DNA of 64,000 nt, from contig CM060733.1 in assembly GCA_030704615.1 (NCBI GenBank), forward strand, positions 32,612,001 to 32,676,000, given 5' to 3'. Numbering within the stretch: position 1 is the stretch's first letter; the number at the start of each line of letters is the position of its first letter. This DNA comes from Takakia lepidozioides (lineage: Eukaryota > Plantae > Bryophyta). Positions 2,800 to 54,174 of this stretch are shown here, piece by piece. A program made the position numbers and the translations under genes. Below the pieces are notes generated by a model, which was not told the origin of the DNA, did no database searches, and saw nothing but the letters and a program-made list of their open reading frames with translations.

Positions 2800-5065
2800 A
2801 TGGCGGGCAAGGGAGAGGGGCCGGCTATCGGCATAGACTTGGGCACGACTTACAGCTGCGTAGGAGTGTGGCAGCATGATCGTGTGGAGATCATTGCTAA
2901 TGATCAGGGTAACCGGACCACACCTAGTTATGTTGGTTTCACTGACACTGAGCGCCTCATCGGTGATGCTGCCAAGAATCAAGTGGCGATGAACCCCACC
3001 AACACCGTCTTTGGTATGTCTTTTACGCGCTGGCTCTTGTTGGTTTCTCTTTGAGATTTTACTGGCTTCTGAGTACGGTGTTTTGGTGTGTTATGCACGG
3101 CTGGATATTCTGTATGTTTGATCTGTTCGTGTTCTTTTTCTTTGTGGCTTTGTGGCGTCTGGAATGTCTGCTTTGTAGCGATGTCTTACTGTTCCGGTGG
3201 TAGATCATTTTGTGACTTCTGAGTCCGATTATGACAGACAGTATCCTGCTTTTCATGCGGCTTTTGTTGTGGAGTCATGTTTTGGCACTCACAATTCTGT
3301 TCTTCGTGCAGATGCGAAGAGGTTGATCGGAAGGCGATTCAGTGATGCCTCTGTCCAAAGTGACATGAAGTTGTGGCCCTTCAAGGTGACCCCAGGGCCA
3401 GGCGACAAGCCTATGATCGGTGTGCAGTATAAGGGTGAGGAGAAAATGTTTGCTGCTGAAGAGATCTCCTCCATGGTTTTGATTAAGATGAAGGAAATTG
3501 CTGAGGCATATCTTGGATCTACCATCAAGAATGCTGTTGTGACGGTGCCAGCCTACTTCAACGACTCCCAAAGGCAGGCCACCAAGGATGCTGGGGTGAT
3601 CGCAGGATTGAATGTGATGAGAATCATCAACGAACCGACTGCCGCAGCTATTGCTTATGGTCTGGATAAGAAAGCTACTAGTGTAGGCGAGAAGAATGTC
3701 CTCATTTTTGACCTTGGAGGTGGTACTTTTGATGTCTCTCTTCTCACGATTGAGGAGGGTATTTTTGAGGTGAAGGCCACCGCTGGTGACACTCACCTTG
3801 GAGGAGAAGATTTTGATAATAGGATGGTGAATCATTTCGTCCAAGAGTTCAAGAGGAAGTACAAGAAGGATATTAGTAGCAACCCTAGGGCTCTACGTAG
3901 ACTCAGAACTGCTGCGGAGAGGGCGAAGCGCACTCTGTCATCAACTGCCCAAACCACCATTGAAATTGATTCGCTGTACGAGGGTGTAGATTTTTACTCG
4001 ACGATCACTCGCGCTAGATTTGAGGAGTTGAACATGGACATGTTCAGGAAGTGTATGGAACCTGTAGAGAAGTGTTTGAGGGATGCGAAGATGGACAAAA
4101 GCTCTATCGACGATGTCGTGCTGGTTGGTGGGTCAACTCGTATTCCCAAGGTCCAGCAACTTCTGCAGGACTTTTTCAATGGTAAAGAGCTGTGCAAGAG
4201 CATCAACCCTGACGAAGCTGTAGCGTATGGGGCAGCCGTTCAAGCTGCTATTTTGAGCGGTGAGGGAAATGAGAAAGTTCAGGACCTGTTATTGCTTGAT
4301 GTTATTCCCTTGTCTCAGGGTCTTGAGACGGCTGGAGGAGTGATGACCGTCCTCATTCCCCGGAACACAACGATCCCCACGAAGAAGGAGCAAGTTTTCT
4401 CGACTTACTCGGACAACCAGCCTGGAGTGTTAATTCAAGTGTACGAGGGTGAGAGGGCCAGGACACGTGATAACAACTTGCTTGGAAAGTTTGAACTCTC
4501 TGGCATCCCCCCTGCTCCCCGCGGAGTGCCCCAGATTACTGTTTGTTTTGATATCGATGCCAACGGTATTCTGAATGTCTCTGCCGAGGACAAGACCACC
4601 GGTCAGAAGAACAAGATCACCATAACAAACGACAAGGGCAGGCTAAGTAAGGATGAGATTGAGAAGATGGTACAGGATGCTGAGAAGTACAAGTCAGAGG
4701 ATGAGGACCACAAGAAGAAGATCGAGTCCAAGAACAGTTTGGAGAACTATTCCTACAACATGAGGAACACCATTAAAGATGACAAGATTGCCGGCAATCT
4801 AGACCCAGCCGATAAGAAGAAAATTGAGGATGCCGTGGAGGCTGCTATTCAATGGTTGGACCACAACCAGTTGGCAGAGTCAGATGAATTTGATGACAAG
4901 ATGAAGGAGCTTGAGAGTATCTGCAATCCCATCATTGCTCGAATGTATCAAGGTGGTGCTGGAGGTCCTGCAGGGGCTGCTCCCTCATATGGTGCTTCTG
5001 CCGGAGATGGAGACGATGATATGCCCTCGTCAGGTGCTGGGCCCAAGATTGAAGAAGTTGATTAG
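2800..5065 (+). CDS. HSP70: Cytosolic heat shock protein 70 (2 exons: 2800-3013 and 3312-5065; 655 aa)
   Basis: [20 protein letters not shown] and [13 protein letters not shown] signatures, and C-terminal [12 protein letters not shown] intron 3014-3311 follows a 214-nt first exon, the position typical of plant cytosolic HSP70s. Confidence 0.98.
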
Positions 5066-8000
5066 ATTGGTTGCAGAACCTGGGGGGGGGGGGTGGGTTG
5101 GGGGAAGGCAGGGAAAGATTGGTATGAAAGCATTTCGTAATAGAGATTAATTGCTGCAGGTCAGTCAGAAGATAAGTGTAGGTTGCCTGTGCAACCATTT
5201 TACTTCATTGTATCGACTGATTATTCATTATTCCTTGATCATTCTTTACTCAAGGTTTGAATCAGTTTGTCAACTGTGCTGGTATTGTTTGATTCTGCTT
5301 AAGACTTTCATTATGGTTTGTTGACTGACCTGTCCTCTTGACCTAATACCTTTTCTTGCTTATGCTGAGGAAAAATTTCCAATATAATTTTGTCTAGTCT
5401 TCCTCATTCCCTCTATGGAAAACAAGTGAGGAAGGACCTTGCATCGGCTGCAGTAGCCTGCATACTGATTATCAAGTGCAGGCGCTTATCCCATGCAAAC
5501 AGAAGGGAGTAGGGGATTTACAAGGTAGTCGAAGGACTTAAACATTTTCTCACAGAAGGACCAGTGCTGGACCTGCATGCACTGGTCAAACAAAAGCAGA
5601 GTAAGCATGTTACAAACTGAAAATGTGGAGGCATGCTAATTCTAACAGGCAAAATGAGAGGTCCTAACGTCCTAACCGTTGAGGTGGAAAACTGTTCTTG
5701 TGTCCTGCATTTTGAGCCTTACCCCATAGATTTTCGAAGTCTAACAGCCCACAAAACACAATCTTTGAGCCCAATTTGGACAACATCCCAATCTTAGTGA
5801 CAAAAGAACATTGCGACACAAATGTGATAGTTTCAATCTTCGGACTCTCCAAGTCTTCAATGAGGTTTTGAGTTCTATATGACATGGAATCAGACCCTTT
5901 TTTTGGCCTCCTCCCTAATGTGTGTTAAACCCTTTGATACCTTCTTCCTGAGTAAGACAATACAGCCAGTAGTTCACCTACAAACAACATGTGTGCACTG
6001 TACAATGACCTCTAACCTCCGCCTAACTTATCTTAAGCTCCCTTCCTCTCAGAAAACATGAAACCCTATTAGGGTTTTCTAGAACGAAGGCCACATAGAT
6101 GATAGCTCAGATTCTCACTGGCTACAGTTGGAGTTGAGACTGGCTTGCATGTGCCTCAGTCTGGATTGCTCCCACCTCTTCTTCCTACCATCCACTGCCC
6201 AACTTTGCAAGCTTCCATGGCGGAGGCGAAGCAGGGGATGATTTGAAAAGCCGTTAGCGATCCAGAGGCAACGGCAACATACTCTGCTTGGGTCATCCAT
6301 CCAGCTCATTTTATGTAATGTAAAGAATAATCAATTTTGAGTCTCATTTACAACTTGGAAGCTCTCAAGGGCTACCTCCCCTTTTACCATAAAACAAAAT
6401 TTAAAAAAAACTTGGAAGCAATATCTGATAAAATAAAATAAAAAATTAAGAAAGCAATATGTTTTATTTTTATTTTTCCAATGCAGGCCTGGGCCCTGCA
6501 CAGTGAGACTTTTCTTGGTTTTCTCTTTTTTTCTTTTTCCGTTTTGAAAAGGGAAGCAATATTCTCAATATACACTGAGTGGAATAGTAACAAGCGATAG
6601 TGCTATTTGCAGAACATGGGGATCATGTAGGGAAATTTTTTACGACTTTTTGGTTGTTCCAATTGAGTGTAGCAGCGCACGATGCAGTCCATTGCATCGT
6701 TTACGCCACATTTGTTCAAATTGAAGTATCTTGAGAAGCTACTCCTTCCCATCCGCTAAATCGGGGTTCAAAGATCATTCCAGCTTTCACTACATGGAAG
6801 GCTTGGTGAGGAGGTGGAGCATCATGTGCCAAGGTCCATGACGAGATGCAGAATTCTCTATCTACATTTTTCAAATTGAAGTTTTGAGAAGCTCCTCCGA
6901 TCACGTAAACCAATGGCAGAAAGATCGCGGGTTGTTGTGTTGTGTGTACTTCTTGGTTGTTCCGAGAGACGAGCATAGCGGTGTGTGATGTGGTCCACAA
7001 CAAGAATACACAATTACCCTTTCAACTCGAAGTCTTCAGAAGGGGGGTTGGTATCCAATGAGCACAGCATGAGCAGAAAAGGCATGTGCAGGAAAAAATA
7101 CAAGCATAAGCTCGATCCACACTTATAAGGATAATATGTTTGTAAATGAAAATACAAATCATAGGCAAACATAGGTATTGCTACGTTAATAGGGTCCATG
7201 ACATGGTCTATGAGTATATTAGCTAAAACCCTCTATATAACACTAAAATTTAATAGTTTATTATAATATTATACACAGAAGTATGTCCGCTAGTGGAACT
7301 AGTTCAAAATTTCTGCTCATAAAATCAAGCCACATAGATACTGGGACCGGGCAGCAACCGGCTCCGGAGCTTGTAAAGTGGGGCTGGCGCTACAAGTTGT
7401 ATAATAATCGTATGGCATTCCAGTCTTGGGGGAATGCAGCCGCCCAATTGGAAGAATTTTTTTAGCTTCGATATCCTTCTCACTTTCCCAAATGCTTACA
7501 ATTATGGCTGCAATTACTTAGAGCATATTGTTGTAGGGGAGCTCTAGCTCTATGTGAAAGTCAAAAGCTGGCTTTGAGCAGACAATGTTGAGTCTCGTTT
7601 AGGCACTTGAAGGCAGTGTGAATGTGAACCAACTTGTATTTGGCAGAACAGTGGAGAGTTGTCTGCACATGCCACCGCGGAATGCAGGGGGCCGGCCAGC
7701 ACCCCAGGGCTTTGAGATATAGCCCTCTGTTGAGACGCCAATAACTTGTCATATTTGTGGTAGCGGTCAACACTACTGTCACCACTAGGGTAGAGAGCCC
7801 AATTACCTGCATGTTATTGAATCGTGCAACCAAAGACCCCGCTCCCCAAACCATTTCTTATGCAAACATGACCCAGCTTCTTACGCGGAGTAGGCCCTAT
7901 GGATACGCTTGATCCACATATGCTCACTCAAGAAATTTCACAAACCCTGTGACATATCAATGCCTCCATATCTTTCATTGGCTATTACAAATATACATGG

Positions 8001-14696: not shown

Positions 14697-15739
14697 GGGG
14701 GATGCTTCCGCGTGAGCGCGTGAGCCTAGGCGGGCTCACGCCACATCATCAGTTATTGCCACGTTGGCTGACGCCACGTCAGCCGACCTCGGCAGTGTGC
14801 CCGACGCCACGCCACGTCATGCCACGTCATTTTCATAGGCATGGCCCTATAACCGTGGACCGAACAGGCAAATGGGGGCCTATAGCCGCGGATTGCGCAT
14901 TTGACAGACAGGGAACCATGTGTGGGCAACGAGGCGAGGTGCAGAAGAGAGTTTAGGGTTTGTTGGTGAATGTTGCAGAATGATAGTGTTTGTAGAGACT
15001 GAAATGGTTGTGGATGTATTAATGTCCAGGTCATCAGTCTACAATGGTCCTTAGATGATTTAATGCCATGCTAATGTGGTATTTTACGTTGTTGTCATCA
15101 GTGTAGAATGGTTGTGGATGAGTTTATGAGGATGAAGCAGAGCCAATGTGGATGGGACACTGCTAATATGGATGAATGGGGATGAATAGTTGTGGACAAA
15201 TGTGGATGAAATATCGTGAATGGATGATAGAGTGGATGAATGTTGAGCGAGGATGTCATTCTAACATTTATGAAAACCAAGCACAACGATCGATGTCGTT
15301 TATACAAACATTAGAAAATTGTGCCTTAAATCCGTCCTGAAGCATTTGATAAGATTTAATGAATGTCTGGCATTTGGGGAAAGGTAGACAGATGACAGCA
15401 ACATAGAATAAGACAACACAGCAGATGTGAGAGCGATCTTTCATTCTACGACTTTGTCCGAGTGCTTACTGCAACATTCTGGTATGCAGCACGCTCTTCT
15501 TTAGCTGTCCTCTTTAGTGTCGACACATTGCGAGCCATTTCAGCATTACTTATTGCTTATTGCGGCCCCTGCCAATGAGGTAGAAATATGCACATGTATG
15601 TTACGAGAGTACTGCAACTTTCATGGTTTTTCATCAGGACCATTATACAACAACATTCAAAATGATTTGGCTTTCGTTTGTGCATGAGGAGGAATTCCGG
15701 GTCTTACAACATTGTGTAACAGAAATTGACAAAACGTCT

Positions 15740-16075
15740 GCCTTGTTTTCTTGTTTGATCCATAACCAATGTTAGGCATGAGGATCCCGCCTTTGAACTT
15801 GCGCTGAAACCGAGAGTCCATACACCATCCACTAGGTGCACTGTCTTCTTGTTTGAACCATAACCAATGTTACACATCAGGATGTTGCCCTTGAACTTGT
15901 GTTGAACCCGAGAGTCCATAAATCATCCCCTAGGTGCCTTGTATTTTTGTTTGACCCATAACCAATGTTAAGGCATCAGGAGGCTGCCTTTGAACTTGCG
16001 TCAACCGGACCCGAGAGTCAATACATACATCATCCCCTAGGTGCCTTGTCTTCTTGTTTGACCCATAACCAACCA
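15740..16075. repeat. ~100-110-bp tandem repeat (3+ units) inside MULE copy A
   Basis: ttgtttga.ccataaccaatgtta...ttgaacttg...ccgagagtc.ata...ctaggtgc repeated. Confidence 0.85.
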
Positions 16076-16302: not shown

Positions 16303-19300
16303 TCAGTCACTAGAACTATCCCCTGAAACTTGTGCAGTATCGTCGACGTAAACCCGAGCTCTGAGGTGCCTGTTGTGCTTTCGAGCACATGGGAAAGATA
16401 ACATGAAACTCTGTTGACGAGCAATGGCCTCCGCGTAGTCGGGTAGGATGTATGAACGTGGAGGGCTGTACCACAAGTCATTGTGAATAAAAGAGACGTC
16501 GACCAAAGGAATAGCTTCCAATATCCTGCCACCCAAAGATCCACAATTGCATTAGCCACCATTAGTGGGAAAGGGGGGGCCGTTTTCACGGGAGAAATCG
16601 GATGCTTACAGAAAAACAACTTACTCACATGCGAAATCGTCGTCCAAGACTTTGTCGTCCCCTTCATTGATTTCCACATGCACTATACCCTCATGTTGTT
16701 GGGCGGCAGGTGCCGGCGTTGGCGCTTCCAAGTTATGGAGGAGGTCATTGAAAATGTTCGCATCCCCTTCCATACCAAACAAATGCCTGCCCGCTGCCTT
16801 GCAAGCATGGTACGAAGCTCCTGCAGGACAGAGTTCTCTCAGGACACATATAAACAAATTTTGCACCAAGAAGAAAACACCGCAGCAGGTTGGGGGTGAA
16901 ACCTGTGCCAAGAGTGAGGTCCACGATACGCGCCCCCGGATAGGAACAAGTCTCCACAATTGTTTGAATAAATGTTGGGCTCTGCTCCTTGGCCCCTCTC
17001 CATGGTGTGGAGTTGGCTTTCGCAAGCACACATTGGAATCCACGTAATTGTAGTGCATGTCGTCCACCACTGGATCGAACTTATCGTTGATGAAAGAACC
17101 TCCCCCATGAAGCCTGAACTCCTTCACTGCTGTGGGAGTTGAAGCAGGGTGCACTCTGACGAGGCAGACGGCCTCAAAGAGACGGGTCTACACACAAGAC
17201 AACATGAAGCACATATTAATGAATCCAAAAAAATTCATCTGGAAAGAACAGTGCTTGAAACCTCTAAAAATGAGTGCGTTGACGCACTCATTTCCGCAGG
17301 GGTGAAATGGAACTTCAAATGAAGTAGGCAAGAGAAAGTCGATTACTATTTGTCCGGGACAGTCGCCCTTTGTCAAGTACAGGCTGTTCACACCATTCCA
17401 CGTTTTGATGATTTTCATCCCCGAGGCCTTGAGATAGCTTGCAAGCTCCCGTCGACATTTCGTATTGACCGACTAGATCATTACAAGAACCCCTACATCC
17501 GATAAAAAAAAATTGCAAAATGAAAAGACCCAAAGCCAGTACCTCTCATCAAATGCATTCCATGTTGGGCAAGTGCATGTGGGTAGAATGTCCGATACTG
17601 GCAGCCCATCCGGAATGTCCACAATCACCATGTCGGCACAACATGGTTTCAGAGAACCATTGACCCAACACTGCCCTTTCGAAACCTGAAAACAGACAGA
17701 CGACAAAAATTAAATAACTATCCAAAAGGGAAAACAGTAAAGGAGACAAACAGTGGGAATTGTCTTACCGAGTTAAGGAATGCACACAACTTGCCCCAAG
17801 TTCGAGAGGGTTCTCCAGTGTAACCAAATTTTCTGCTTTCCATCATGGCAAGGAATGAATCATTGACAATCTCGCATTTACATTCTCGCTGGATTCTGGA
17901 TGGGTGCTCCACTGCATCGTATGGCTCAATCCTCCTCTTACGTTTTCGTTCCTTGTTTGCAATTGGGGTCTGCGCTACCTCACCCCCCGCAGTCTCCCCT
18001 TGGATGGCTTTCTCCTTCCCTTTGTCCTTTGTACCCTTTCCCTTTCCCTTCCCTCTCGCATGAGTTTTGTTGGCTGCGGGTTCCTTCTCAGCGAGGTTTC
18101 GCAGATTCCTCTCATGCAATTCCTTGTCAGTAAGAGGGGCCAAAGACTCCGCATTGTTGTTCTGGTTCCGTGTCTGGAACTTATACCAGGGGCAATCTGA
18201 TTTCGAAATGTCTAGATACCAGCAGCAGTCTTTCAGGTGATATCTCCCATAGTCTCTAAAGATGGCTGCCGTGTACATGGTCTGACTGTTAGAGGGGTCA
18301 GACCACAAGTCGATGAAGGCAGGGTACTTACTGAGGTTTTTTCCCGGAATGAGCACGTTCTTGATATACCTACAAAATAAAAGAGGTACACTTTTAGACA
18401 TTGAAGGCAAAAAAGCATATATTGCGGCCCTCCCAAAATGTGTGCGTCGACGCACATAGTTTGGGGTGCACAAATACTTGAGCATGAGGCAACCAAAATA
18501 CACGCACAAGTACCATATGCAAGAATAGGAGAAAACAAAGGGTTCCATATGCAAAAAGATATCCCCTTCTCGGCAGACAGATATTCCATTTAGAACTGCC
18601 AACGAAACATTGAAATCCATGATGGAGGAGAGAGCACATCTGAGTTTGTGGCCCTCTAAAATTGCGTGCATTGGCGCACACAATTTTTCATGGCCACAAA
18701 CTGCCTGTCTACTGATTGCCAAAGATAGTTTTCAAACATAAAACAAAATTAACGAACCTGTATACGACCCTCTTCATGGCTCCCTCCGCCCCTCCATCTC
18801 GGGAAAACTCTCTGAAGAAGCAGTTGCTCCAAGCTGTGGCCTTCCACTACCTCAAGTAATCCTCCAGAGTGTCCTCGGGCACGGTCATGGTAATTTTGTA
18901 GTCATAAAGTTGTTTCTCCAGCACCTTGTTTGCACGAGCTTCAATCTGCAGGTATTCATATGCATGGGTTAGAGTCCATTCATGGGAAGATATTCTCAAA
19001 AATTTCAAGCACAGAAAGTCCTGAAAAGTATCTGGCTCCAGTAGGTGGCTTTGTGCAACCATGTATCAAGAACTTGGTTGCTGAAGGGTTTGATGTGCCC
19101 GGTGTTTTCATCTCTTTCACCCCTAGGGAAACAAAATGTATCCTTGACAGTTGGGTCAGAATTCCAAATCTCCAACCATTTCACTTTCTGGTCAGCTTCC
19201 ACAGCTGCAGTTGACAACTGGTGAAGCTTTTCCTGTGTCATCTCCGGTTTGGTGTTATTGTTCCAGTGGATCCTCACCTGGTTAAGAAACTCGGGACCAA

Positions 19301-20236
19301 AATCAGGGTCAACTATTCTCAGCTGTTTCACGAAAGCGCTCATGAGCTTCTTCTGTATCTCATTCATCGTAAACTTCATGGCTTCCGCCACTCCCTTGGA
19401 CGTCCTCAGACCCTCCGGGTTTTTCAAATAGTACTCCGCTTTTCCTCTCTCTCCAGCTTCAGCTATTTCTTGCTGCAAAACGTAATCCGGAATGAGATCA
19501 CTTGTTACTGACAATATCACAACAGACAATGGAAGGCCAGAGCGATGGAATACTTACAGTGTACATGTACTCCATGAATGCTTCCCTCGTCAGCTTGTAC
19601 CAGGTCCCTGACGTTTTCGATGTCAAACATTTCTTGAATGACTCCGCACTCAAGATGCTCTTGAATGAATTGAGGGGCATCTAGCCGATATTCTGGATCT
19701 TGAATAGTGTGTGAAGAAGGTTTGTTGTCACATGGGCGGTTTCAGTTCCCCTGTCACATACAGTGGTGTGTCGTCAGTGAGTGCTAAAAGCAAACAGACA
19801 ATGAAGGAAAAAATGCGGACAATAACAGGTGAAGAAGACACTTACTTGTTAACGTCGTCCATTGCCGTCAACAATGCAGTGGTGTTTCCCTTGGGATCCA
19901 GCACCATTGAGGCCACAGAGTAGTGCCACTCCTCCTCGGTGCTATGATATCTCTCGATCATGTTCCTCTAGGCAAGCAATCGGTGGTTGTCATCCCAGAC
20001 ATGAAACATCTTGCCAGAGAAAGGCTGGGTGATGAGCCTCTTGCAAATGATAGATTCAAACTCCTCGTTTATCTGTCGCCAGATAGGATCCCAGCCTCCA
20101 ACAATGGATTCGTCCACCAACACCTCTCTGCCAGCGGAGTCTGCCAATGAGACGTAAAAAACAGATTGACCCTCTATGTACCCATGGCAAAAATCCTGTT
20201 CCAACTTTTGAATGTCGTTTGTCAGAGTTGGTCAAA
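16303..20236 (-). pseudogene. Spliced ParB/Srx-like + beta-class N4C/N6A methyltransferase-like fusion gene, copy A (5'-truncated, several stops/frameshifts)
   Basis: FHVWDDNHRLLA (~19980-19997). ADMVIVDIPDG (17605-17619) at the motif IV position. LSDVGVLVMI. KEQSPTFIQTIVETCSYPGARIVDLTLGTG|ASYHACKAAGRHLFGMEGD is motif X-I-II-like, with intron 16821-16902. GT-AG introns match the copy at 42614-46724. Confidence 0.8.
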
Positions 20237-20402
20237 CCCTGGGGGGTGCACTCCTCATTAAATGTACCAGCCAGGTGCGTGCACAGGAGGGGGTATTTTA
20301 AACCCCCCCATGTACAACATTATATATACAGAGGGGGGTTTAAAACACCTTAAATATAATATTACAGGAGGGGGTTGTTGAGTTTTCAGGGGTAGTGTAG
20401 TG
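20237..20402. mobile_element. Terminus of an unclassified element starting CCCTGGGGGGTGCACTC
   Basis: 17 identical nt, and ~45 similar nt, shared with 41191 onward. Truncates the ParB domain. Right boundary uncertain. Confidence 0.6.
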
Positions 20403-21259
20403 GTAAGAACGACGATTAGGCTGCATGGCACCGCGGGATCAATTCCCTCTCCTCCTCTCATCTCCTCTCCCGCGTTCGCCTTCCCTTCCCCGAAGATGGC
20501 TGAACAAGATGTGGTGTCGTGCAAGCCTGGCAGCCCTAGAGAAGGGCAAAGAGGTGCATGGGGATATCGTCAAAGCTGGAATTGTACCAAATGTCATTCT
20601 AAACACTGCCCTGGCAGCTCTGGAATAGGGGAAAGAGGTCCATGGCGACATCTTCAGAAATGGAATTGTACCAGCTGTCATTCTGAACAATACCCTAGTG
20701 GACATGTTTGCAAAATGTGGGTGCATCTTGGCGAACAGCCGTGCAAGGATCTGTTCTTGATGTAAGTGAAGAGGGTCGCTCTCAGATGGGAGTGTACACC
20801 GGAAATGTATCAGAAAATGTTTAGTCTTCAGGCTTCCCGCACGTCGGGCATTGACAGGCTACCTCTCATCCCTGCATCTGTTTGTTTGTTCAAATGTACA
20901 CTCCCCGACCTGCATTTCAATTTCAGTCTATTGCCAAGAGTAGAGAGAGCGAAATGTACTCATACGACGTTTGCCATTGCATTGTGGCCATTTACCCAGT
21001 CCGTGCCCAGTTTGGGCGGAACAGGGAGAGGTGTGTGTGAGGGAGAAAATATTCATGATAGCCTTGTGGCCATAGACCCTGCACCCAGATTGGGCAGAAC
21101 AAAGAGGAGGAGAGAGAGTGTCATGACACTGGTTGCTAAAACCTTGCCAGCCCTAGACCCCGCCCCAAAGCAGAAGATGGACATGGCGAGGAGGAAACAA
21201 CAAGTAGGACTGCGAAACCACTTCAATCCATGCCCCATCAAAGGGACCTATCTTCATTT

Positions 21260-22120
21260 ACAAAGTCAAAGGGAGTGTTCGACACTATGGCTGAACGAGG
21301 TGTGGTGTCGTGGAGTGCGGTGCTTGCAGGGTATGCACAACAGGGACGTGGGATGGAGGCTTTGGAGACCTATGAGCAAATGATGTGCGACGGGGTGAAG
21401 CCCGACCACATCACGTTTGTGTGCATTTGCAGTGCGTGTGCAAGCCTGGAAGCCCTGGAAAAGGGCGAAGAGGTGCATGTCAACATCGTCAGAGCTGGAA
21501 TTGTACCAAATGTGATCCTGAACACTGCCCTGGTGGACATGTATGCCAAATGTGGGTGCATGGAGGATGCAAAGGGAGTGTTCGACAATATGGCTGAATG
21601 AGATGTGGCGTCGTGGAATGTAATGATCGCAGGATATGCACAACATGGTTGTCATAGGGAGGTCCTACAACTAGAACGGCTTGAAGCAGTTTGTGTTCTC
21701 TCTGCATGCAGCCACACTGGCCTTCTGAATAAAGGAAGACGCAACTTCGATTCCCTCATTCAAGATCATGGTGTCACTCCGACAGTATAGCACTTTGGCT
21801 GCATGGTGGACCTTCTTGGACGTGCGGGACAACTGGATGAGGCAGTGGACCTGAACGTGCGGCAACATCTATCCTCAAGTGGAATGAACAGGATGCCGCG
21901 ACTTATGTTGCTATCAAACATCTATGCTGTAGCTGGCACGTGGGTTGATACTATAAAGGTGAGAAGAATGATGAAGGTCAGAGGGGTTGAAAAGGAGCCA
22001 GGTCGCTGCTGCATTGAGGTTTGCAACAGGGTGCACACCTTCGTTGTAGATGACAAGTTGCATCCCAGAATTAAGGAAATCCATGCTGAGCTGAGAAGAT
22101 TGTCTGGGAAGATGAAGGTG
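21260..22120 (+). pseudogene. PLS-class PPR pseudogene with E/E+ domains
   Basis: VVSWSAVLAGYAQQG, VKPDHITFVCICSAC, LVDMYAKCG, MVDLLGRAG, LLSNIYA and KEPGRCCIEV. Internal stops and deletions. Further PPR pieces at 20495-20730 (+), 22520-22780 (+) and 23135-23510 (-). Confidence 0.9.
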
Positions 22121-22149
22121 ATTTGCCAGGAGCCGTTTTCTAGATTACC

Positions 22150-23130
22150 TATGATTACCTACAAGAAACCTACATGGATAGATGGTCAAGTGGAAGCTGC
22201 AACAGCAACGGCACAATTGATAAAATCAAGCGTTGCTAATGAAGGCACCTTCTTCAACACATTTCACCCTGTTTTTCCCTCTTATCAGAATCGGCCCTAA
22301 ATATCCATATTGAATTCTGCAAGTTAGCTGGTTGAGCGAATCTTTGATAGTTTGGAGTGACTTTGACATGATACTCCCAACTAACAACAGGAAAGTATCC
22401 TAAAAGAGGGGTAACAGAGATGAGGAGAAGCTATGGGATGAATACTTTTCTGACCCCAGTCAATGGTGGGACAACCAAGGCAAAAAGGTGAATGCAAAAA
22501 GGTGAATGCCTGTCAGATTACCTGTCATTCTGAACACTATGGCTGAACGAGATGTGGTGTCGTGGATTGTGATGTTTGCAAGGTATGCACAACAGGGGTG
22601 CGGGATGGAGGCTTTGGAGACCTATGAGCAAATGATGGGGGAATGGGTGAAACCGCCCACATAACGTTTGTGTGCGTTTGCAGTGCGTCTGGCAGCCCTG
22701 GAAAAGGGCAAAGAGATCCTTGGTGACATCATCAAATCTGTAATTGTACCAGATGTCATCCTGAACATTACTCTGGTGCAACTGTGCCGCTGCAGCTGCT
22801 GCCTTTAGTTGACCATCTACCCATGCAGGTTTCTTGTAGCTACTGACCCCCACATGGAATCAAGGTAATCTGGAGCTTGAAGTCTAGCCCTCTTGGATGA
22901 ATTTGGACCCACACTCTATCCATGCTCATTCAGGAAAAAACAGGGATAACAGGGAAAAACAGGCTGAAATGTGTTGAAGAAGGTACCTTCATTAGCAGCG
23001 CCTTGTTCTATCAAATGCACTGATGCCGCTGCTGTTTCCAGTTGACCATCTACCCACGCAGCTTTCTTGTAGCTATTGATCCGCAGGGAATCAGAAGTAA
23101 TCTTGTGTTTAAAATCGACCTCTTGGATGA
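22150..23130. pseudogene. Fragments of an OSB-type (organellar ssDNA-binding) PDF motif interleaved with PPR fragments
   Basis: EEKLWDEYFSDPSQWWDNQGKKVN (~22420-22495, +) and repeated YKKP(T/A)W(I/V)DGQ(L/V) pieces on both strands. Confidence 0.55.
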
Positions 23131-23509
23131 ATCGTGTTCCTCGACACCACCTCGTTCAGCCATAGTGTTGAACACTCCCTCCGCATCCTCAATGCTCCCA
23201 CAATGGCATACATGTCCACAAAGGGTATTATTCATAATCACATCCGGTACAATTCCAGTTTTGGTGATGCAACCATGCACCTCTTTGCCCTTTTCCATGG
23301 CTGCAGGCTTGCACACGCACTGCAAAGCACACAAACATGATGTGGTCGAGCTTCACCCCTTCCCCCATCATCTGCTTTCAAGTCTCCAAAGCCCCATCTT
23401 GCGCTCCTGCTCTGCACACCCTGAAAGCATCGCGTTCCACGACACCACATCTCATTCAGCCATAGTGTTGAATACTCCCTTGGCATCCTCAATGCTCCCA
23501 CATTTGGCA

Positions 23510-25295
23510 GACGTGATGTCCTATGATGTGCTTGTTGGTGGGGCTGTGTTGTACCCCATGGGATATACTCTGGACTTTTGGGAGGAAACGACATCCTACA
23601 GGCCGGAGTGGTAGTCAGGAGATGGCCAACGTGCATTGGTCCTAGTGCGGTTTATTGGGAATGTAGCGGTGGATCATAGGAACATGATGCCCACATTGGC
23701 TGCATTCTCAGATTGAGTATCTAGGCCACATGATATACCCTGGAGGATTGGGTGTTCAACAGACAAAGGTGGAGGCCATTGCATGCATTCCACGTCCCAT
23801 GGATGTAAGCAGAGTTCATGCTTTCATGGGATTGACAAATTACTACCGATGGTTTGTCAAGAGATTTAGTAGCATAGCAAAGGCTCTTACCAAGTTGACC
23901 AAGGTGGGTCAGGAGTGGTAGTGGGAGGAGGAGCAGGAGGAAGCCTTTGAGGAACTCAAGGCTCCATTGACTTCTGCACAATGGCTTTAGCTCTCATGAC
24001 TGAACCGTCTGTAGGATGATCCGGCTGCAATCGAATGAAGAGCTCATGGCGTGGGATACCTCGCGTCTTCTCTGAACCACCCAAAGTTGTTTGAATTTGG
24101 AAAGGGCAAGACTCCAAATCCGCCTCTGTGAGGCCAAATTTGCAACTGCTGCTCTCCCCAACATCAATGGTTGTGCTCCCGAATCCAACAAGACTCGCAG
24201 TGGCCTATACCTCCTCCCGGCTGGGCCACTCAACTGAAACACTCCATCCTGATTGTCCACTAGAAGTTACTACTCCAGGAGTCACCATGCTACGCTCAAT
24301 GGCTGGCCTAGTTGGTAATTCGTGCAACCTTGCAGGTGCCGCTTGCCATGGCGCGGCTGTGGCTGACTTTATCCTCGAATCCAAGGCATCCATAGACTGC
24401 ACCTCATCTGCTATCCCCGCAGGTAGTGCTGATGCATCACCACTCTCACAGAGTCTAGCTGCTAGTCTGAACACAACAGCTGGCCGAATCCCCGGCATTG
24501 CAATTGTCATTGCAAAAAATAATTGCAGTAAATTGCAGAAAATTGCCGTAGCCACCCCCAATAATGTACTGGCTACACCTTGCTCTGTAGCACTACCCAC
24601 AGTTGCATTTCCCGAGCCAAACCAACTCTCCCCAATGGTACTCGTGGCTCTACCTCTGACACACTTGGACAAGCGGGTGCCATTGATGGCGTAGGTGACA
24701 CTGTCTCAGCCAATGTAAAGGACTGTGGAAGCCTTGTTTGACGACTTGCTTCCCCCCTTTGTGGATCAAAATCCACATCCGCTCCTCTTGGCTGAGGAGC
24801 ACGCGTTGTTGTTCGAGTGACAGCAGCAGCAGAGTCCAATACATGCAATGGCCCTACAAGTGTGGCTCCGCACATGAAGCCCATACCAATCTGGTCTTCC
24901 CTAGGCATAGGAGGTTGTGCAGGTGGGGCTTGAACCTCAGGCCTTGGAGCTAGCGCAACATGAGTAGTGACCATGGCAGTAAGACGTTGCTCTAGCTGGG
25001 CAAGTCTATCCACCATGCCTTGGTCATGACCTTGACCCTGACCCTGACCCTATGCTCCTTAGTTTTGGTTACGACCTCCACCACGACCTCTGCCTCCTCT
25101 ACCTCTCTGGACTACATTGCCTCGTCCTTGGCCACCATTGTTCCCTTGGAACTGGCCTGGCCGTAGCTCAGGATGCAAGTCATAACAATGGGCCTCCTCA
25201 TGCCCATACTTGCCACAATGCCCACACTGTAATTGTGTAGGTTGTGCCTATGTTGGCCCTTTGCCTCTCTCCGGGCAATCCTTCTTGACATGGGG
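23510..25295. mobile_element. Rearranged Ty3/Gypsy fragments: protease end and RT-connection (+, 23510-23980); gag-protease (-, 23995-25295)
   Basis: YDVLVGGAVLYPMG, AFMGLTNYYRWFVKRFSSIAKALTKLT and RVLLDSGAQPL. Paralogous to 28673-31548. Confidence 0.85.
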
Positions 25296-28154: not shown

Positions 28155-31100
28155 AGGATTAGATCTTGCTTGGTCGGGCTTCTATTCTTCCCCTCCATCT
28201 CTGTACTATTTTCATTACCTTGTACTTGTAGTTTCCAAAGCCTCTCTTGGTGGAGGCCAGTCAGTCCGGGGTTTTGGGCTGGGATATTCTGTAGGATTAG
28301 CATTGCAGCTGGATTTTGGTGTGGGGGTGTTGATGTTTTGATTTCTTGTGTTTGGATCCCCCCCCCAACACCTGCATGCTTGACTGTGCGCCATGTTGGT
28401 TTTGTGTGGGCGCTTGCTTTCATAGGGATTAGGCCGGATTTGATCACCGGTCAATCCTAGAGTATGCTGTCGGTGGTGAGGCTGGAGTGATGACCAGCAA
28501 GACCACCAGTGTTTCTTCTATGGTGAGGCTGGGTTGATGACCAGCCAACCATAGGAGTTCTTGCGGTGGATGCAGGTGCAGGTGCCCTGAGCCATTGGGA
28601 TATGACCCTTAGACTGCAACAGGTGCCCACCCGTGTCACTATTAGATTAGTACTAGAGCCTTATAGTGTCACGTGGAGGAGGTGCACATTGTGAGTGTCA
28701 TCACGGAGTTACCCAAGGGTTTTGAGGGGAGTACGGCTAAAGGCAGTAACAGTGAGAGTGGGTTCACAAGACGAGGTATTCGGTTCAGACCACCTTCACC
28801 GCCACCCTCAACTACTGTAGAGTCAGATACAGACTCAGAGGCTTCATCAACAGGTGTGCAGTTTCATTCGCCATTGTTGTGGGACGACATGGAGGAGATG
28901 TATGGAGCTACCAAGGGGCCTCGTAGGTACTCTGGAGTTGTGGGCACAATCGAGTTGGATGACTTTATCCAGGAGTTCGACAGCTGGTGTGATTTGCAGC
29001 AGATGCGCAATCCACAGCTATTCACCCCATTCATGGCGTGGAAGGGACTGTTCCAGCATTTGGAAGGCCCGCCTATGGACGATTACCACGAGTTCAGGCA
29101 AGGACATGAAGCAGAAATTGAGGAGTGGAGGATATATTGGTCACCCAACTACGTCTCCATTACTCGAGGCACGACGCGACCAATAGCTGCATCAGTACCA
29201 ATATCTCCCACTGCCAGCACTAGTAGTGGAGCAAGTAGTGCCGGTACTTCTGCAGGTGGTACCAGTTCAAAAGGTGCTACTACTCCTCCTGCCACGACTA
29301 CAACACATGTGCCTAGATTCAACCCGGTGGTGGAGTTCTTCGAGGAATTGCGGAGGAATTACCAAGGTGTACGAACAGAGAAGATGCGAAGTTTGCAAGA
29401 CTTCCAGCGCAAACCCAGTGAGAGCCTGCGAGAGGCGTACACTCGTATGAGGCGCTTGATAAGTGTGACCCAAGGGGTTACTGAAGCTCAGGCAATCCAG
29501 TTTTGGTATGGAATTCTGGACAAGGAGCTCAAGAGAAGGGTGCGAGATGCAACCCTGTTACAAGCAGCCCAACCCACATTAGCAGATGTGTTTCTGCTGG
29601 CTGAGCGGATTGAGCTCAACATGGTGGAGGAGCGAGTTGTTACCATTGCATTTGGCAAGGACATGCCTGCACGAGGCGCAGCTGCCAGCCCACAGGCACA
29701 AGGTACTGCCCAACAGCATGGTCAGGGGGGCAAGGTTGCCCAGCCCAAGTTCCATGGAGCTTACAAGGGACCTCAGGTGCAGAGGCCCGTGGCATCTTTT
29801 GCAGGCCAACAGCAACCAGGGGTGATATGTTGGACATGTGGAGGACCCCATGTCAAAAGAGATTGCCCAGAGAGTGGCAGAAGGCCGGCACAAGTACAGC
29901 CTGCACAGTTGCAGTGTGGGCATTGTGGCAAGTATGGGCATGGAGATGCCCAGTGTTATGACTTGCATCCTGAGTTGCGCCCAGGCCAGTTCCAAGGGAA
30001 CAATGGTGGCCGGGGGCGAGGTGGACCAGCCCAGAGAGGACGAGGTGGTCGGGCACGAGGTGCAGGCCAAGGGCAAGCTCAACATGGCCAAGGACGCGGA
30101 GGTCAGGGTGTTGACCAAGGCATGGCCAACCGGCTTCAGCAGCTAGAGCAGAGGCTCGCTGCCATGGCTACAGCTCAGGCGGTACCGGCTCCCACGCGGG
30201 ATGGTCCACCTCCTGTTCCTGAGGGAGGAGATATGGGAGGCATGGGATTCATGTGCGGAGCAGCACTACCACTAGAGCAGGTGGAGTCTGCTGCAGCCGT
30301 GACTCGAGGAGCATCACGAGTTCCTGAGCCACGGATCCACAGCGTGGGGAGGCAAGCCGTCAAGCGAGGCTTCCTCAATCATTTACATTGGCGGAGATAG
30401 TATCGACGCCATCCATGGCACCTAGTTCTCGCCCGACTGTTACCGAGGCGGAGGTTACTATGCCATTGGGGAGAGCTACACGTGCAGCACTGACACCTGC
30501 TACCAAAGCTAGTGCAGCCGGTGTGTTGTTGGGGGCAGCCACCTCTGTGTGCCAAGCCCCACTGTTCTCAGCAACCATGATTGCGACGTCGGGGGTAAGA
30601 CCAGCTGCAGTGTTCAGACTAGCAGCAACACTCTGTGAGAGTGGGGAGGTCACTTCATCTTCTGCGGAGTTAGTGGAAGGTGTAGTGGCAGAGGAATCCT
30701 CGGATTTGAGGGTCAAGACTGCCACAGCTGCGCCCTGGCAAGCTGCAGCTGCCAGGTTGACGGAGCTGCCAGCTAGGCCAGCCTTTGAGCGTGCCATGGT
30801 GACACCTGGAGTTCTCTTGTTAGACAACCAGGATGGCATTTTCTCTTTGAGTGGACCGGCAGGCAAGAAGTACCGGCCACTGCGGGTCTTGTTGGACTCG
30901 GGAGCTCAGCCACTGATGTTGGGCAGAGCTGCTATTGCAGGTTTGGGCCTCATGGAGGCGGATATGGAGCCTTGTCCTTTCCAGATACAGACATCTCTGG
31001 GAGGATCAGAGCAGGCTCGGGGCATGACACGGCATCAGTTGGCCATTAGACTGCAGCCGGATCATCCTATCGATGGCTCAGTAATGCGAGCCAAGGCCAT

Positions 31101-31548
31101 TGTGACAGACGCGGTCTCTTACGATGTCCTCGTTGGTGGGGCAGTGTTATATCCCATGGGCTTCACCCTGGACTTTTGGGAGGAGTCAGCATTCTACAGG
31201 CCTGGATGGCAGTCAGAGGATGGTCGTCGTGCACAGCTCCCTGTGACATTCATTGGGGGTATTGCGGCTGCCCAACGGGGCAAGATGCTAATACTAGCCG
31301 CCTTTACAGCTGCAGTTAGTTGGCCTGGAGAGTTGCTGGAAGGCAATGCCCATGCAGAGGATATGCCACCTCCAGCAGAGCAGGATGACATGCATGGTAT
31401 GGCGGAGTTGCCTGCCATGGTTGCTCACACTCCATTGTGGGGTACGAGCAAGGATTTGCAGCAGGTTGCTGATCGACGGGTGCAACAAGCCTGGGTAGAG
31501 GCTTTTGTACCGCAAGAGAGGAGGCATTGGCAGCTGGTGCAAAACTAG
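28155..31548 (+). mobile_element. Ty3/Gypsy retrotransposon 5' part: LTR-like sequence, gag with two Zn knuckles, aspartic protease; truncated by CACTA sequence
   Basis: Gag-like FQRKPSESLREAYTRMRRL. Knuckles CWTCGGPHVKRDC and CGHCGKYGHGDAQC. Protease VLLDSGA ... DVLVG. Confidence 0.88.
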
Positions 31549-35251: not shown

Positions 35252-38200
35252 GTGTGTACCTCAAAGAGAGAAGTCCGCAACGAAGGAAATCCAGAGCCGA
35301 ACCCATCAATGAAGACAAGCGAGAACCGGGTTGTTCACAATCTGTCCGACTCCGACGAGGTCATGGAAGTTCCGAGATCGTCCTGGAGATCAGGCAAGTC
35401 CTCAATGGACGTCAGTGGACGAGGGAGTCATATTCCCAGCACGAGCACCGCAGTTCGATCCATTCTTGAAATTTTGCAAGGGCTTCACATGGAGGGACAC
35501 TGCTCGGAGCTGGCCGGGCTGGACTACAGCAAGTTCGCAATTAAATCGGTTACATGCCTTCCCGCAGACGTCGACGGTAATATCTTCTTTGAGTTCCCTC
35601 CTCGGACGGACTACTCGAGGGCGTCCGGAATGTTGACAGATATGGATAGAAAACATGACGGTCATCCTTGGTGCGTCACCAAAACCACCAGCATGAAGAT
35701 GCTCGATGGTATGCGGGTGCGCTACATTGTTTGTGCGGGCGCGTTGCGGTGTTTCTCCCCAACTTGCTTCCACTTTAAATCCAGAGGTCACAGGAACGAG
35801 ACCGATTGGACAGGCACAACTCATCAACCATTTCGAGCTCAGGAGAAGGTTTCGAACTCCACATTTAAGTGTGCGCATTGCAAAGAACCACCACACTGCA
35901 TGTCTGTTTGTAATGCCAAGCAGTTCTATGTGTTGCACCGTTTCCCTGACCTCATCCGAGCTTGCATACACGTTGGTTCCCATTGTCACAAATTGGCGAG
36001 GGGGAACTCGCGGGAGGCTGCTCACGAGGCAGAGCAGCTCGTTCAAAAGGAGGTTAAGTTGAGACCGGGTGCCAAACCCAAACAGATACAGCTCCAAGCC
36101 GCCCATAAGATGGCATTGGCAAGAATTATGTCGGAAGACGGCTCCGATAGAGTTCCTCTCGATGACAAGGAAATGGAGGCATTGCTGGAGTCGGTGTCCC
36201 ACGTCTGTTCACCGAATGTCCGAAACCACATTGTCTCAGGTAAACAAAAAATTGGGCGTGGCTCGGATATGCACTCCATTCTGGAGATGAAGCGACGATG
36301 TGGATATGACTACATTCATGGAAGTAGGTTTCCATGACAAGGGTCTGAGGCAGATCGTTGTTTCGTATTCAAAATGTCCACGTGTGGACCTGGCAGCGGC
36401 GTCGAACTGGTCGACAGGATGACGAGTGGGGACTTGTCAAACATTTGGGTCATGTTCGACCATATCAAGCGAATTACAAATCACTAGTAGATGACAATGG
36501 GTGCACATGTCTACGACACCCGCTGTAGGATGCTAATGACAATTGTTTTTGTGAGATGAAAGGAGAGGACACACAATCGGAGATGCTTCTTTGGCAGGGA
36601 ATAAACGAACAGATGGCCAAGGCGGGATTGTCCCCTCCCAATTTCCGTGGTTTCATGGCGGACAACGCACAAGCAAATTGGGCTGCCATCCGAAGGGTGT
36701 ACGGGCAAGACCCCAATGTTCTCATGGAAGGCAAGGAGAGATCTTGTGGGTTCCATTTTTTGCAGAGCCTTTCGCAGTACACAACCAGGCTCGTGGCGCC
36801 AGATTTCAGAGAGGAGCACCGTTCCATGTGTCTTGCGTGGAAGCGCGCTCCCACCTTGGATGATGCAGAGACACAGTTTGCATGTATACGGGCTTGGTGG
36901 ACATCGTCAGGTGCTGTAAGGAAATCGGACGAGGGAGCAATGGTCAGTTGGCTAGCATGGTGGCATTATCGTTTCCTCCAGTTCGGCGACTATATGTGGG
37001 AGGTGAGTTGCACGAATTCGCGTCCCGTTGAATATTATTCTTGGCATTATTTGTAATTTGCTTGTAACCTCAACATGTGCTTGTGCAGGAAATGTGTCTC
37101 GACTTCGACACCGACATGCCCACGACAAACATGGCCGAATCAGTGCATTCTTCCTGGCGTGCCTCCTCTGCGGCGCATCTGGTGGACATCATCACTGCCA
37201 CAACGGAGGACATTGTGAGGTCAATTATGCAGCAAAGCAGGTACGACGAGTTCTTGAAAGGGAAACAGTGGGGCTTGGGGCCGGACAGGCAGGAAATGCT
37301 GATGCGGACTGCCTCCAGATCGAAGAATCCTCGGAAGTGGGTGGCGGCCTTGCGAGAGGGCCTTTGGGACACGCCATTGCTTCGAAGAGGCCAACATTTG
37401 GAATGAGATGTTCATACCCGTCCAGTGAGACGAAGACTTGACGAGGCACCTGGCGGGGAAGAGGATTCATGGCGAGCTGACAAGAATATTTGCACGCTCC
37501 CTCGTGGTCCTGTGATGTTGCCCGAGGAGGTCTCGTCGAGCACCGCAAATCCTGCACGTTCAAGATCGCCATCTCCTTTGAGCACAGGGCATGTGCCCGG
37601 GCAACATAACGAGCCATCTGTAGTAAAACAGTACAACATTCCCATTATGGAGACAAGAGTGTCGGAGTCACAGTGGAGAATTGCAAGGACATTGCCGGCA
37701 TTTCGAGGGAAGTGTTGCGCCATCCGGATGGATACGAGAGCACGCTGTGGTGAGATGTACCTGCACTTTGTTTCAGCGGCAGATTTTTGACTCCCACATT
37801 TGCTCACGCCACAACGCAAACGTTTTGGTTATGTAGGCACGACATAATGACCTGTGTATTTGGCAAACCCAAGTACAGGATTCAGGGAATGCCGGAGCCT
37901 CCGGGCGTCTGGCCTATTCCACCGGGTTGCAGCCTCTCAAAGGAATGAGGCGGATGCTCTATCTGCAACAAGATTTCGAATGGTGCAACGCACAGACGTC
38001 CCGGCCCACGCATTTCCAGTTCCTCAGACCCAGCCATTGCAGACTGCTCGGTCCAGCAGAGACGGATTGGACAATTCTGCACATCCCACAATGCGATTCG
38101 GAAGAGTGAAGAGACGACACCCTCCCAACAAGTTGAATGAGACTCGGATTGCCAATGCTCTTGGGATGGCTTGCACTATTCAGAGCTCCGTGGACGTACC

Positions 38201-38474
38201 TCCACCCGGCCTTGGGCGTGTTTATCGGATGGCAACGGCCGGCTCGGACGATGTATACACAATTACGATTGGAGTGGAGCCGACTTGCAATTGTACGGAC
38301 TTCTCGTTGATGGAAGCAAAGAAGGGTTCAAAGTATTATCCGTGCAAGCATCTGTATTACATTTACCTGAAGAGGTTGAGGATGAACGTGACTATTGATG
38401 ACTTTATTCATGCACCGGCGTTGAGCGTGAACGAGCTGCACAAATTCCTCCTTAGGGATTCCAGAAATCATTGA
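35252..38474 (+). pseudogene. MULE transposase (GCM-like Zn finger - DDE - SWIM), copy C, disrupted
   Basis: DRKHDGHPW..C..C..C..C..HxGxHxH. VMFDH, FMADNA, CGFHF (CxxH) and TNMAES. SWIM CNCTDF...PCKHLYY. Intron 37003-37088. Confidence 0.85.
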
Positions 38475-38629
38475 TGGGGCAAAGGGAATCCTCCATATGG
38501 ATATTTTCAATTGCATTTTCATGTATCAGACTTTTTTTTGCAGTGTAATGAAATGCACCCCAAAACTCCTGGAATGAGGCAATATTCTATTCAAACTGAG
38601 ATCCAACAGAAGCAGTTGTGGGGCCATTT

Positions 38630-54110: not shown

Positions 54111-54174
54111 CTGTGGTCATGGTTGAGGTGCACCTATTCTGAGGCGGCCTGTCCGGGGGCGGCATTTCCAGCTA

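Follow-up and report, generated by a model that had tools for sequence, protein, structure and literature searches.

A probable transposon accessory gene with ParB/Srx-like and altered methyltransferase-like domains: two decayed copies in Takakia lepidozioides

INTRODUCTION

What does an amino-methyltransferase fold do in a bryophyte genome when its catalytic DPPY has become DIPDG? The question is raised by a minus-strand gene at positions 16303-20236 of a 64-kb stretch (64,000 nt) of Takakia lepidozioides contig CM060733.1, here called the window, within which all coordinates are counted. A preliminary description made from the sequence had taken this interval for an intron-containing methyltransferase-like domain of the beta class, that is, of the N6-adenine (N6A) and N4-cytosine (N4C) type, and had considered it a possible mobile relative of bryophyte writers of N4-methylcytosine (4mC). 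The domain is indeed present, but the interval is a whole gene that also includes a ParB/Srx-like exon at 19845-20231. We consider it likely, with a probability of about 0.7, that 16303-20236 holds the dead accessory gene of a two-gene DNA transposon, truncated at its 5' end and belonging to a family in which a ParB/Srx domain is joined to an altered PF01555-type fold.

RESULTS

One gene in two copies and its relatives

A six-frame reading of the window together with self-comparison indicated that 16303-20236 (minus strand) and ~42614-46610 (minus strand) are two copies of one multi-exon gene (Table 1), which we refer to as copy 1 and copy 2. The encoded parts are an N-terminal ParB/Srx-like domain, a helical middle with a basic linker, and a C-terminal beta-class (PF01555-type) amino-methyltransferase fold; the helical domain and linker account for ~450 residues between the two named domains. 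The exons of the two copies are 67-81% identical in nucleotide sequence and their introns cannot be aligned, in keeping with the intron divergence noted in the preliminary description.

The window exons were searched one by one, and an exhaustive HMMER search with the 242-residue ORF (open reading frame) of copy 2 recovered 62 relatives. These were Logan, ENA, or JGI fragments and two proteins of the moss Ceratodon purpureus (KAG0605740 and KAG0624017); two further C. purpureus paralogs came from a later search. Word-indexed homologue searches returned only Ceratodon paralogs or database fragments and no prokaryotic relatives. Among the several paralogs of Ceratodon, the methyltransferase part is annotated in four gene models (88-99% identical); the ParB exon is covered in part by a model of its own. 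This moss is the only source of named relatives. A Logan contig, L002 (SRR18067353, 5555 bp), carries a full-length member of the family that looks intact and has fewer introns.

The gene is paired with a transposase

Copy 2 is separated by a tandem array from a decayed, divergently oriented transposase with a putative SWIM zinc finger, and a second decayed copy of the same transposase lies elsewhere in the window (Table 1). SWIM matches in the transposase scored 16.6 and 18.4 bits (E = 0.0057 and 0.0015) against a cut-off of 19.6 bits. The same arrangement was found in Ceratodon. At one locus (L001), the same transposase is divergent from the gene, with a 138-bp × 8.3 array between them (6343-7482). 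At a second locus (L006), on another chromosome, the transposase-gene layout is repeated, the transposase and ParB exon share 79-92% nucleotide identity with those of L001, and the repeats between transposase and gene (4000-4109) are 24-bp units with a palindrome of the CCGG-TATATA-CCGG type. The suggestion that the gene is mobile thus gains a concrete form, because a transposase accompanies it both in the window and at two Ceratodon loci.

The arrays stand at the same transposase/cargo position in all loci, have unrelated units, and look lineage-specific. In the window, 11 matches to the palindrome core GTGCG-N4-CGCAC were counted where 0.05 would be expected, nine of them in the copy 2 array and two in copy 1 introns. 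Copy 1 has diverged greatly, yet its introns share this core with the copy 2 array; the core is therefore a candidate for a conserved protein-binding site, one that would also lie within introns of the cargo gene.

The limits of the elements can be placed approximately. A subterminal 9-mer, GCGTGAGCY (GCGTGAGCC), has eight matches in the window against 0.63 expected, all of them at 14718-14741, 42125-42174, and 53252-53323. From this distribution, one element would run between ends at ~42.1 and ~53.3 kb, and the element that holds copy 1 would have its left end at ~14.7 kb. No clean terminal inverted repeat or target site duplication could be defined in the window; what was found there are the inverted clusters of the 9-mer at 42125-42174 and 53252-53323. 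A 98-bp × 3.3 tandem repeat is located at 15739-16072, just downstream of the copy 1 stop and within the presumed element.

The superfamily of the transposase is tentatively Mutator-like. Its leads in the ESM Atlas were proteins of GCM, FLYWCH, FAR1, and Mutator-like element (MULE) type, and a D...D...C-x-x-H spacing was read by eye. One reason for keeping the assignment tentative is a warning from red algae, where elements had been misfiled as MULEs via their cargo (10.1101/2025.02.11.637652).

Both local copies are relics

Both copies in the window are pseudogenes. Copy 1 has in-frame TAG codons and an altered splice donor (Table 1), in addition to a frameshift near 17020-17027. Its N terminus is gone upstream of ~20232, where a sequence resembling pentatricopeptide repeat (PPR) proteins stands in place of the array and transposase, and its ParB/Srx-like exon is without the upstream IPLCRL..VRP strand. 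In copy 2, the ParB-like exon has frameshifts at ~46375 and ~46295, between which the reading frame stays open with ~26 codons scrambled, and the middle exons have stops and frameshifts.

Fragments of PPR-protein genes (..VVSW..MI.GYAQ.G..) at 20400-23600 and 53400-54165, mutually 80-89% identical, flank both transposon copies, and the 5' truncation of copy 1 abuts such fragments.

A beta-class methyltransferase fold

All of the motifs listed in the preliminary description (DIPDG, LSDxGVLV, SPxFIQTIVE..GTG, and ASYHACKA..EGD) are present on the minus strand in both copies. The LSD[VA]GVLV strand comes after DIPDG in both; the SP[TA]FIQTIVE..DL[TS][LM]GTG block, which follows WRGA[KR]E, ends at 16903 in copy 1 and at 43308 in copy 2; and ASYHACKA..RHLFG.EGD picks up beyond an intron in motif I. 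This corresponds to the beta-class order IV...X-I-II, and homology bears it out: a family profile built from a 54-sequence alignment (A1) aligned end to end with CcrM (6pbd) over the whole domain in a PDB search (E = 2.9e-7). The same profile matched M1.HpyAVI (E = 0.004). Only these N6A enzymes were matched in the PDB by sequence, with no N4C chain at E ≤ 10. Comparison of the profile with a Gordonia phage methyltransferase by hhalign aligned motifs X-I-II (E = 1.5e-4).

Folds were predicted from natural database proteins; the inputs were residues 300-596 of the relative P0027 and a Ceratodon ORF (L001:8718-9239). The AlphaFold2 model of P0027:300-596 had a mean predicted local distance difference test score (pLDDT) of 78.7 and a predicted template modeling score of 0.75. 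The top 30 Foldseek matches to this model were all beta-class N6A/N4C methyltransferases (CcrM, E = 7.9e-12). In VIA-align, Z scores over the methyltransferase matches ranged from 15.7 to 12, led by CcrM (Z = 15.7; root mean square deviation, 3.7 Å over 201 residues) and followed by M.BceJIV and MboIIA (14.7-14.9), rotifer N4CMT (14.0-14.3), and M.PvuII (13.8). At the level of the fold, N6A and N4C enzymes are therefore tied within ~2 Z units. The nearest ESM Atlas clusters carried PF01555 in 10 of 10 cases. Profile, Foldseek, VIA-align, and Atlas thus agree on an N6A/N4C-type fold of the beta class, and the predicted structure is of the Rossmann type. With regard to the question of the METHYLTRANSFERASE fold, a beta-class methyltransferase fold with the beta-class motif order is established. 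The same does not hold for formal Pfam membership or for the defining motif IV. Single exons of both window copies had no Pfam match, and the longest copy 2 ORF returned only chance lectin matches in a phmmer search of the PDB.

A conserved, non-canonical motif IV

In the profile alignment, D-I-P-E-G of the family falls on D-P-P-Y-N of CcrM and the TG loop falls on GVGTT. We tallied the motif IV loop over 71 family sequences, a set that includes cluster members and some near-duplicates. Position 1 was D in 40, Q in 28, and E in 3. Position 4 was acidic in 64 of 71 (D, 35; E, 29), and position 5 was G, N, or S in 68 (46, 17, and 5, respectively). The Pro at position 3 is not an independent count because the anchor pattern of the search demanded it. 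L-P-V-P usually comes next after the loop. The canonical [DNS]PP[YFW] was absent at this site in all 71 sequences. The change is therefore from (D/S)PP(Y/F) to (D/Q)-x-P-(D/E)-(G/N): the second Pro is gone, and an acidic residue (Asp or Glu) takes the place of the one that would normally stack on the flipped base. As the preliminary description had proposed from two copies, the non-canonical motif is conserved, and its conservation over 71 aligned sequences indicates that the altered loop is a character of the family, not a product of local decay.

The other motifs were altered to different degrees. Motif X reads W-R-G-x-[RK]-E-K, in which W, R, G, and E are invariant, as is the Asp preceding motif I. 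In motif I, FxGxG has become x-A/G-x-T-G, with loss of the Phe; the window copies read L-G-T-G and M-G-T-G and so retain GxG, and most relatives read A-[SAG]-T-G. The motif II Glu (..G-[ML]-E..) is retained where sequences extend past the intron, in a motif I/II part with a model pLDDT of ~50.

A ParB/Srx-like first exon

The first exon is conserved in the family (..IPLCRL..VRPI..L.NEF..GYR.GDRV.YVS...K.F.VYEGNHRVTAW...NAMNDINW; alignment A2). In Ceratodon it occupies L001 8226-9239, ahead of the annotated start, and has been omitted from the gene models; KAG0624017 and KAG0605740 begin downstream of it, so the annotated proteins are N-terminally truncated. The AlphaFold2 model of the Ceratodon exon (L001:8718-9239) had a pLDDT of 64.7. 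Its first 34 Foldseek rows were all of the ParB/Srx fold (sulfiredoxin, ParB, PadC, Noc, KorB, SbnI, and Pfu-392566-001), each one weak (E ≥ 0.039). VIA-align gave Z scores of 8.1-5.3 over ~90 residues against ParB, Noc, KorB, PadC, and sulfiredoxin. A (D/E)GNHR motif, read by eye, stands where ParB/Srx proteins have GxxR/GCHR. These model-based comparisons lend moderate support to a ParB/Srx-like N-terminal domain. An Atlas search of the middle region of the protein matched no named cluster.

Old intron positions

The intron inside the last Gly codon of the GTG loop, to which the preliminary description had drawn attention, has the same position and phase in copy 1, copy 2, Ceratodon L001, and Logan contig L002. 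For Ceratodon, junctions were taken by mapping the annotated protein back to L001 and comparing the loci side by side. Three more junctions are common to both copies and Ceratodon in position and phase: one after ..NDVN(K/R/W) (phase 2), one after ..(Y/L)W(S/A)Q, and one around ..GQIV/TRLFEA.. (phase 0). L002 retains the motif I intron and is without several others, with one 513-codon ORF spanning three intron positions. The P0027 ORF, from the same runs as L002, is uninterrupted through four intron positions, including that in motif I, and could represent a spliced transcript or intron loss. In keeping with the long eukaryotic residence proposed in the preliminary description, the intron positions are old and recur in a moss; splicing is predicted from sequence.

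Purifying selection on the family

Between copy 1 and copy 2, 403 aligned codons gave a nonsynonymous divergence (dN) of ~0.33 with saturated synonymous divergence (dS; LWL85, ~2.1), corresponding to dN/dS (omega) of ~0.15, and differences by codon position were 131/97/240. We pooled codon counts per block to compute omega. Since the window copies are pseudogenes, they are not themselves under selection, and this part of the earlier claim of purifying selection does not hold for them. It does hold for the family. The intact Ceratodon paralogs L001 and L006 had an overall omega of 0.15-0.16, far from the value of ~1 that would speak against selection. The minimum along the protein was in the methyltransferase-like domain (omega, 0.06-0.08; dN, 0.034-0.037; dS, 0.46-0.59), with higher values in the linker (0.27-0.28) and C-terminal tail (0.34-0.40). 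Purifying selection at the family level in mosses is therefore real and is strong in the methyltransferase-like domain. Given this selection, the family probably still does something for the transposon.

Features and neighboring sequences

Table 1. Coordinates of the gene copies, their decay, and the associated transposon features
Feature	Position	Strand	Basis or remark
Copy 1, ParB/Srx-like and methyltransferase-like gene, 5'-truncated, pseudogenised	16303-20236	-	Translation; tblastn against copy 2, Ceratodon, and family proteins
Copy 1 stop codon	16303-16305	-	Translation
Copy 1 C-terminal tail exon (..SPPRSYILPDYAEAIARQ..)	16303-16490	-	Homologous to Ceratodon C terminus
Copy 1 methyltransferase-like exons overall	16624-17680	-	
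Copy 1 exon with motif I remainder and motif II (ASYHACKAAGRHLFGMEGD...)	16624-16820	-	
Phase-1 GT..AG intron inside last Gly codon of GTG loop	16821-16902	-	Same position and phase in copy 2, L001, and L002
Copy 1 exon with motif X and first half of motif I (WRGAKE..SPTFIQTIVE..DLTLGTG)	16903-17187	-	
Copy 1 exon with motif IV and next strand	17344-17680	-	
DIPDG, counterpart of motif IV DPPY	17605-17619 (copy 1); 43978-43992 (copy 2)	-	Profile alignment to CcrM
Copy 1 ParB/Srx-like exon (..FHVWDDNHRLLA*..TAMDDVNK)	19845-20231	-	Alignment to family N-domain
In-frame TAG	17473-17475	-	Copy 1
In-frame TAG, Lys in copy 2	18847-18849	-	Copy 1
Splice donor GT to AT after ...YWSQ; GT in copy 2 and Ceratodon	19030-19031	-	Copy 1
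In-frame TAG, Trp in copy 2 and family	19968-19970	-	Copy 1
Palindrome core inside copy 1 introns	17274-17287 and 18442-18455	.	GTGCG-N4-CGCAC matches
Inverted pair of GCGTGAGCC, likely left end of element holding copy 1	14718-14741	.	
Copy 2 of gene	42614-46610	-	DIPDG 43978-43992; motif I intron 43192-43307 (GT..AG, phase 1)
Third, short fragment of the gene's N-terminal exon, 60 codons (..IPLCRLISMPFVRP)	41007-41192	+	
Tandem array, 112-bp × 10.7, between copy 2 and transposase	46877-48061	.	40-bp palindrome per unit, core GTGCG-N4-CGCAC
Decayed transposase, divergent from copy 2; putative SWIM zinc finger near 52670-52780	49600-52800	+	tblastn to Ceratodon and 35.4-38.5 kb copy
Second decayed copy of same transposase	35447-38510	+	tblastn

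Two other sequences were recognized in the window. A long, open HSP70 exon at 3197-5065 (+) matched Pfam HSP70 (E = 7.5e-227); the initial ~62 positions of the profile have no counterpart in it, as would be expected if there were a 5' intron. Long ORFs at 28673-31548 (+), with a weak Retrotrans_gag match (E = 5.6e-4), are probably a long terminal repeat retrotransposon between the transposon copies.

DISCUSSION

In the arrangement that we favor, a SWIM-finger transposase is followed by a repeat array and then, on the opposite strand, by the ParB/Srx-methyltransferase-like gene, and this would be the unit of transposition. The protein of an intact element would be brought to the element's own palindrome arrays and may act there in cis, either in escape from host silencing or in help to transposition. 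Several results weigh against this interpretation or parts of it. The PF01555 gathering score (26.7 bits) was not reached by any member, the best values being 20.8 for P0027 and 15.5-15.7 for Ceratodon proteins. The ParB-like exon had no Pfam match, and the family profile found no ParB chain in the PDB. The Ceratodon array units are unrelated to the window array, and the L001 array is without a strong palindrome. No Pfam MULE (PF10551) match was obtained, even for the intact 726-amino-acid Ceratodon transposase ORF, and the Mutator-like label comes from the sub-threshold SWIM, the Atlas leads, and the by-eye D..D..CxxH. Finally, low omega and a tightly constrained motif IV loop are also what one would expect of a true enzyme.

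The last point bears on what the methyltransferase-like domain may do. We give slightly better than even odds to a nucleic-acid- or S-adenosylmethionine (SAM)-binding role without canonical N6A/N4C transfer. We lean to such a binding or scaffold function because the stacking aromatic (now an acid), the second Pro, and the Phe of motif I are gone, and because a large subgroup has Gln in place of the first Asp. The domain may instead be an active transferase whose substrate or chemistry has changed; this is not our first choice, but the very low omega and the sharply conserved loop keep it firmly in play. Some other function altogether is improbable. A bolder version, which we regard as rather unlikely, is that the D/Q-x-P-D/E-G domain would be a SAM-dependent transferase with a new active-site solution, which the ParB/Srx domain guides in marking DNA or a bound protein at the element's own arrays. 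If it were true, a land-plant transposon would be epigenetically marking itself and so be shielded from host silencing.

A fully active DNA N6-adenine (or N4-cytosine) methyltransferase that marks its own palindromes, with D/Q-x-P-D/E-G as a working variant of motif IV, is likewise doubtful. It would account well for an omega of 0.06-0.08 between Ceratodon paralogs, the lowest in the protein, and for a motif IV loop that is highly conserved among sequences only ~30% identical. The motif X Lys, motif I Gly, and motif II Glu (..A/G-L/M-E..) are retained, the window lineage keeps G-T-G, and the nearest solved relatives are true DNA methyltransferases. However, the base-stacking aromatic is Asp or Glu in 64 of the 71 family sequences, the second Pro is gone, the first Asp is Gln in 28 of 71, and not only has the Phe of FxGxG been lost but its first Gly is Ser or Ala in most members. 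We know of no characterized amino-methyltransferase with an acidic residue at the aromatic position of motif IV.

A domesticated host gene, serving as an epigenetic writer or reader akin to the bryophyte 4mC writers and not as transposon cargo, is very improbable. Spliceosomal introns at conserved positions, purifying selection, and the annotation of the Ceratodon copies as ordinary genes are what such a gene would have. However, the 64 kb hold three copies or fragments, each of them decayed, and at least two Ceratodon paralogs lie on different chromosomes with the same transposase and flanks that are 80-92% identical; the lack of specific similarity to DN4MT1, which has TSPPY, completes the grounds on which we rejected this reading. 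The idea that the gene is a bacterial or phage contaminant, or a ParB-methyltransferase gene acquired very recently by horizontal transfer, deserves hardly any credence and was rejected: a ParB plus PF01555 architecture is typical of phages and plasmids, and the tblastn matches in phage genomes (none better than E = 0.1) were all on annotated DNA methylases, but multiple GT..AG introns are common across species, the gene has plant PPR and HSP70 genes as neighbors, the 62+43 relatives from databases are without exception Ceratodon proteins or eukaryote-like contigs, and a 36-column motif X-I alignment found no relative with the family motif X in 185,579 prokaryotic species genomes or IMG/VR. 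Two IMG/VR matches were set aside as spurious, their frame differing from that of a phage portal-type gene.

Several known systems bear comparison with this gene. Bacterial and phage beta-class enzymes (PF01555; CcrM, M.BceJIV, M1.HpyAVI, MboIIA, RsrI, and ParB-fused forms) have the same fold and the same permuted order IV...X-I-II, and in the ParB-fused forms a ParB/Srx-type domain is N-terminal to the methyltransferase, as it is here. The window family appears to share with beta-class enzymes the Lys, Gly, and Glu of motifs X, I, and II named above, and differs from them in its D/Q-x-P-D/E-G motif IV, the lost motif I Phe, and scores below the Pfam gathering threshold. Unlike the bacterial and phage enzymes, it is eukaryotic and transposon-borne, with spliceosomal introns and ~450 residues between the domains.

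The closest published analogue is in red algae, where giant Plavaka/Mutator/Zisupton elements carry PAG2 (PF01555 plus SET) and PAG3 (ParB-like plus 2-oxoglutarate [2OG] oxygenase), with tandem inverted-repeat arrays adjoining PAG3 (10.1101/2025.02.11.637652). The likeness is one of description: PF01555-type and ParB-like cargo borne by a transposon, with adjacent arrays and a proposed role in self-binding and self-modification, as proposed here. Unlike PAG2 and PAG3, the window gene joins both domains in a single protein with neither a SET nor a 2OG domain, and its host genome is of land-plant type. VANC of the Arabidopsis VANDAL elements (Mutator-like) is an anti-silencing factor proposed to act on motifs that recur in the element encoding it. 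It offers a functional comparison only, being an unrelated protein without a ParB or methyltransferase fold.

Recruitment of the PF01555-type fold into eukaryotes is also known from rotifer N4CMT and from MpDN4MT1a/b of Marchantia. MpDN4MT1 has a TSPPY motif and clusters with N4C enzymes (10.1101/2021.02.12.428880). These proteins are host genes with canonical (T)SPPY, which is absent in the window family. No specific kinship to DN4MT1 or N4CMT was found, and a specific DN4MT1 relationship was rejected because (T)SPPY is absent and the family profile finds no N4C enzyme by sequence at E ≤ 10. Methyltransferase folds kept under selection with a non-canonical motif IV have precedents in METTL14, which has a degenerate methyltransferase domain with EPPL, and in the DIRS1 domain, which is in a mobile element. 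These belong to other clades (MT-A70 and the PCIF1-like group 2, respectively), and it is in the window family that the altered motif is itself sharply conserved. The methyltransferase domain of the DIRS1 retrotransposon is inactive, and a survey of eukaryotic adenine methyltransferases reported ParB-linked clades in chlorophytes, chytrids, and haptophytes and nothing similar in land plants (PMC4738411).

If our reading of the locus is right, a fused ParB/Srx-methyltransferase-like transposon cargo in moss-type genomes would be an addition to the known self-modifying cargo. To our knowledge, transposons with their own DNA- or chromatin-modifying genes are rare, the examples being fungal KDZ/Plavaka elements with TET/JBP, the red-algal PAG cassettes, and VANC of VANDAL. 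The family described here, whose cargo would derive from ParB-methyltransferase modules, combines introns of long standing with repeat arrays of its own and with a non-canonical catalytic loop that is sharply conserved and under very strong selection. It may thus provide a handle on two questions: whether a plant transposon can mark or unmask itself, and what an amino-methyltransferase fold does once its stacking aromatic becomes an acid.

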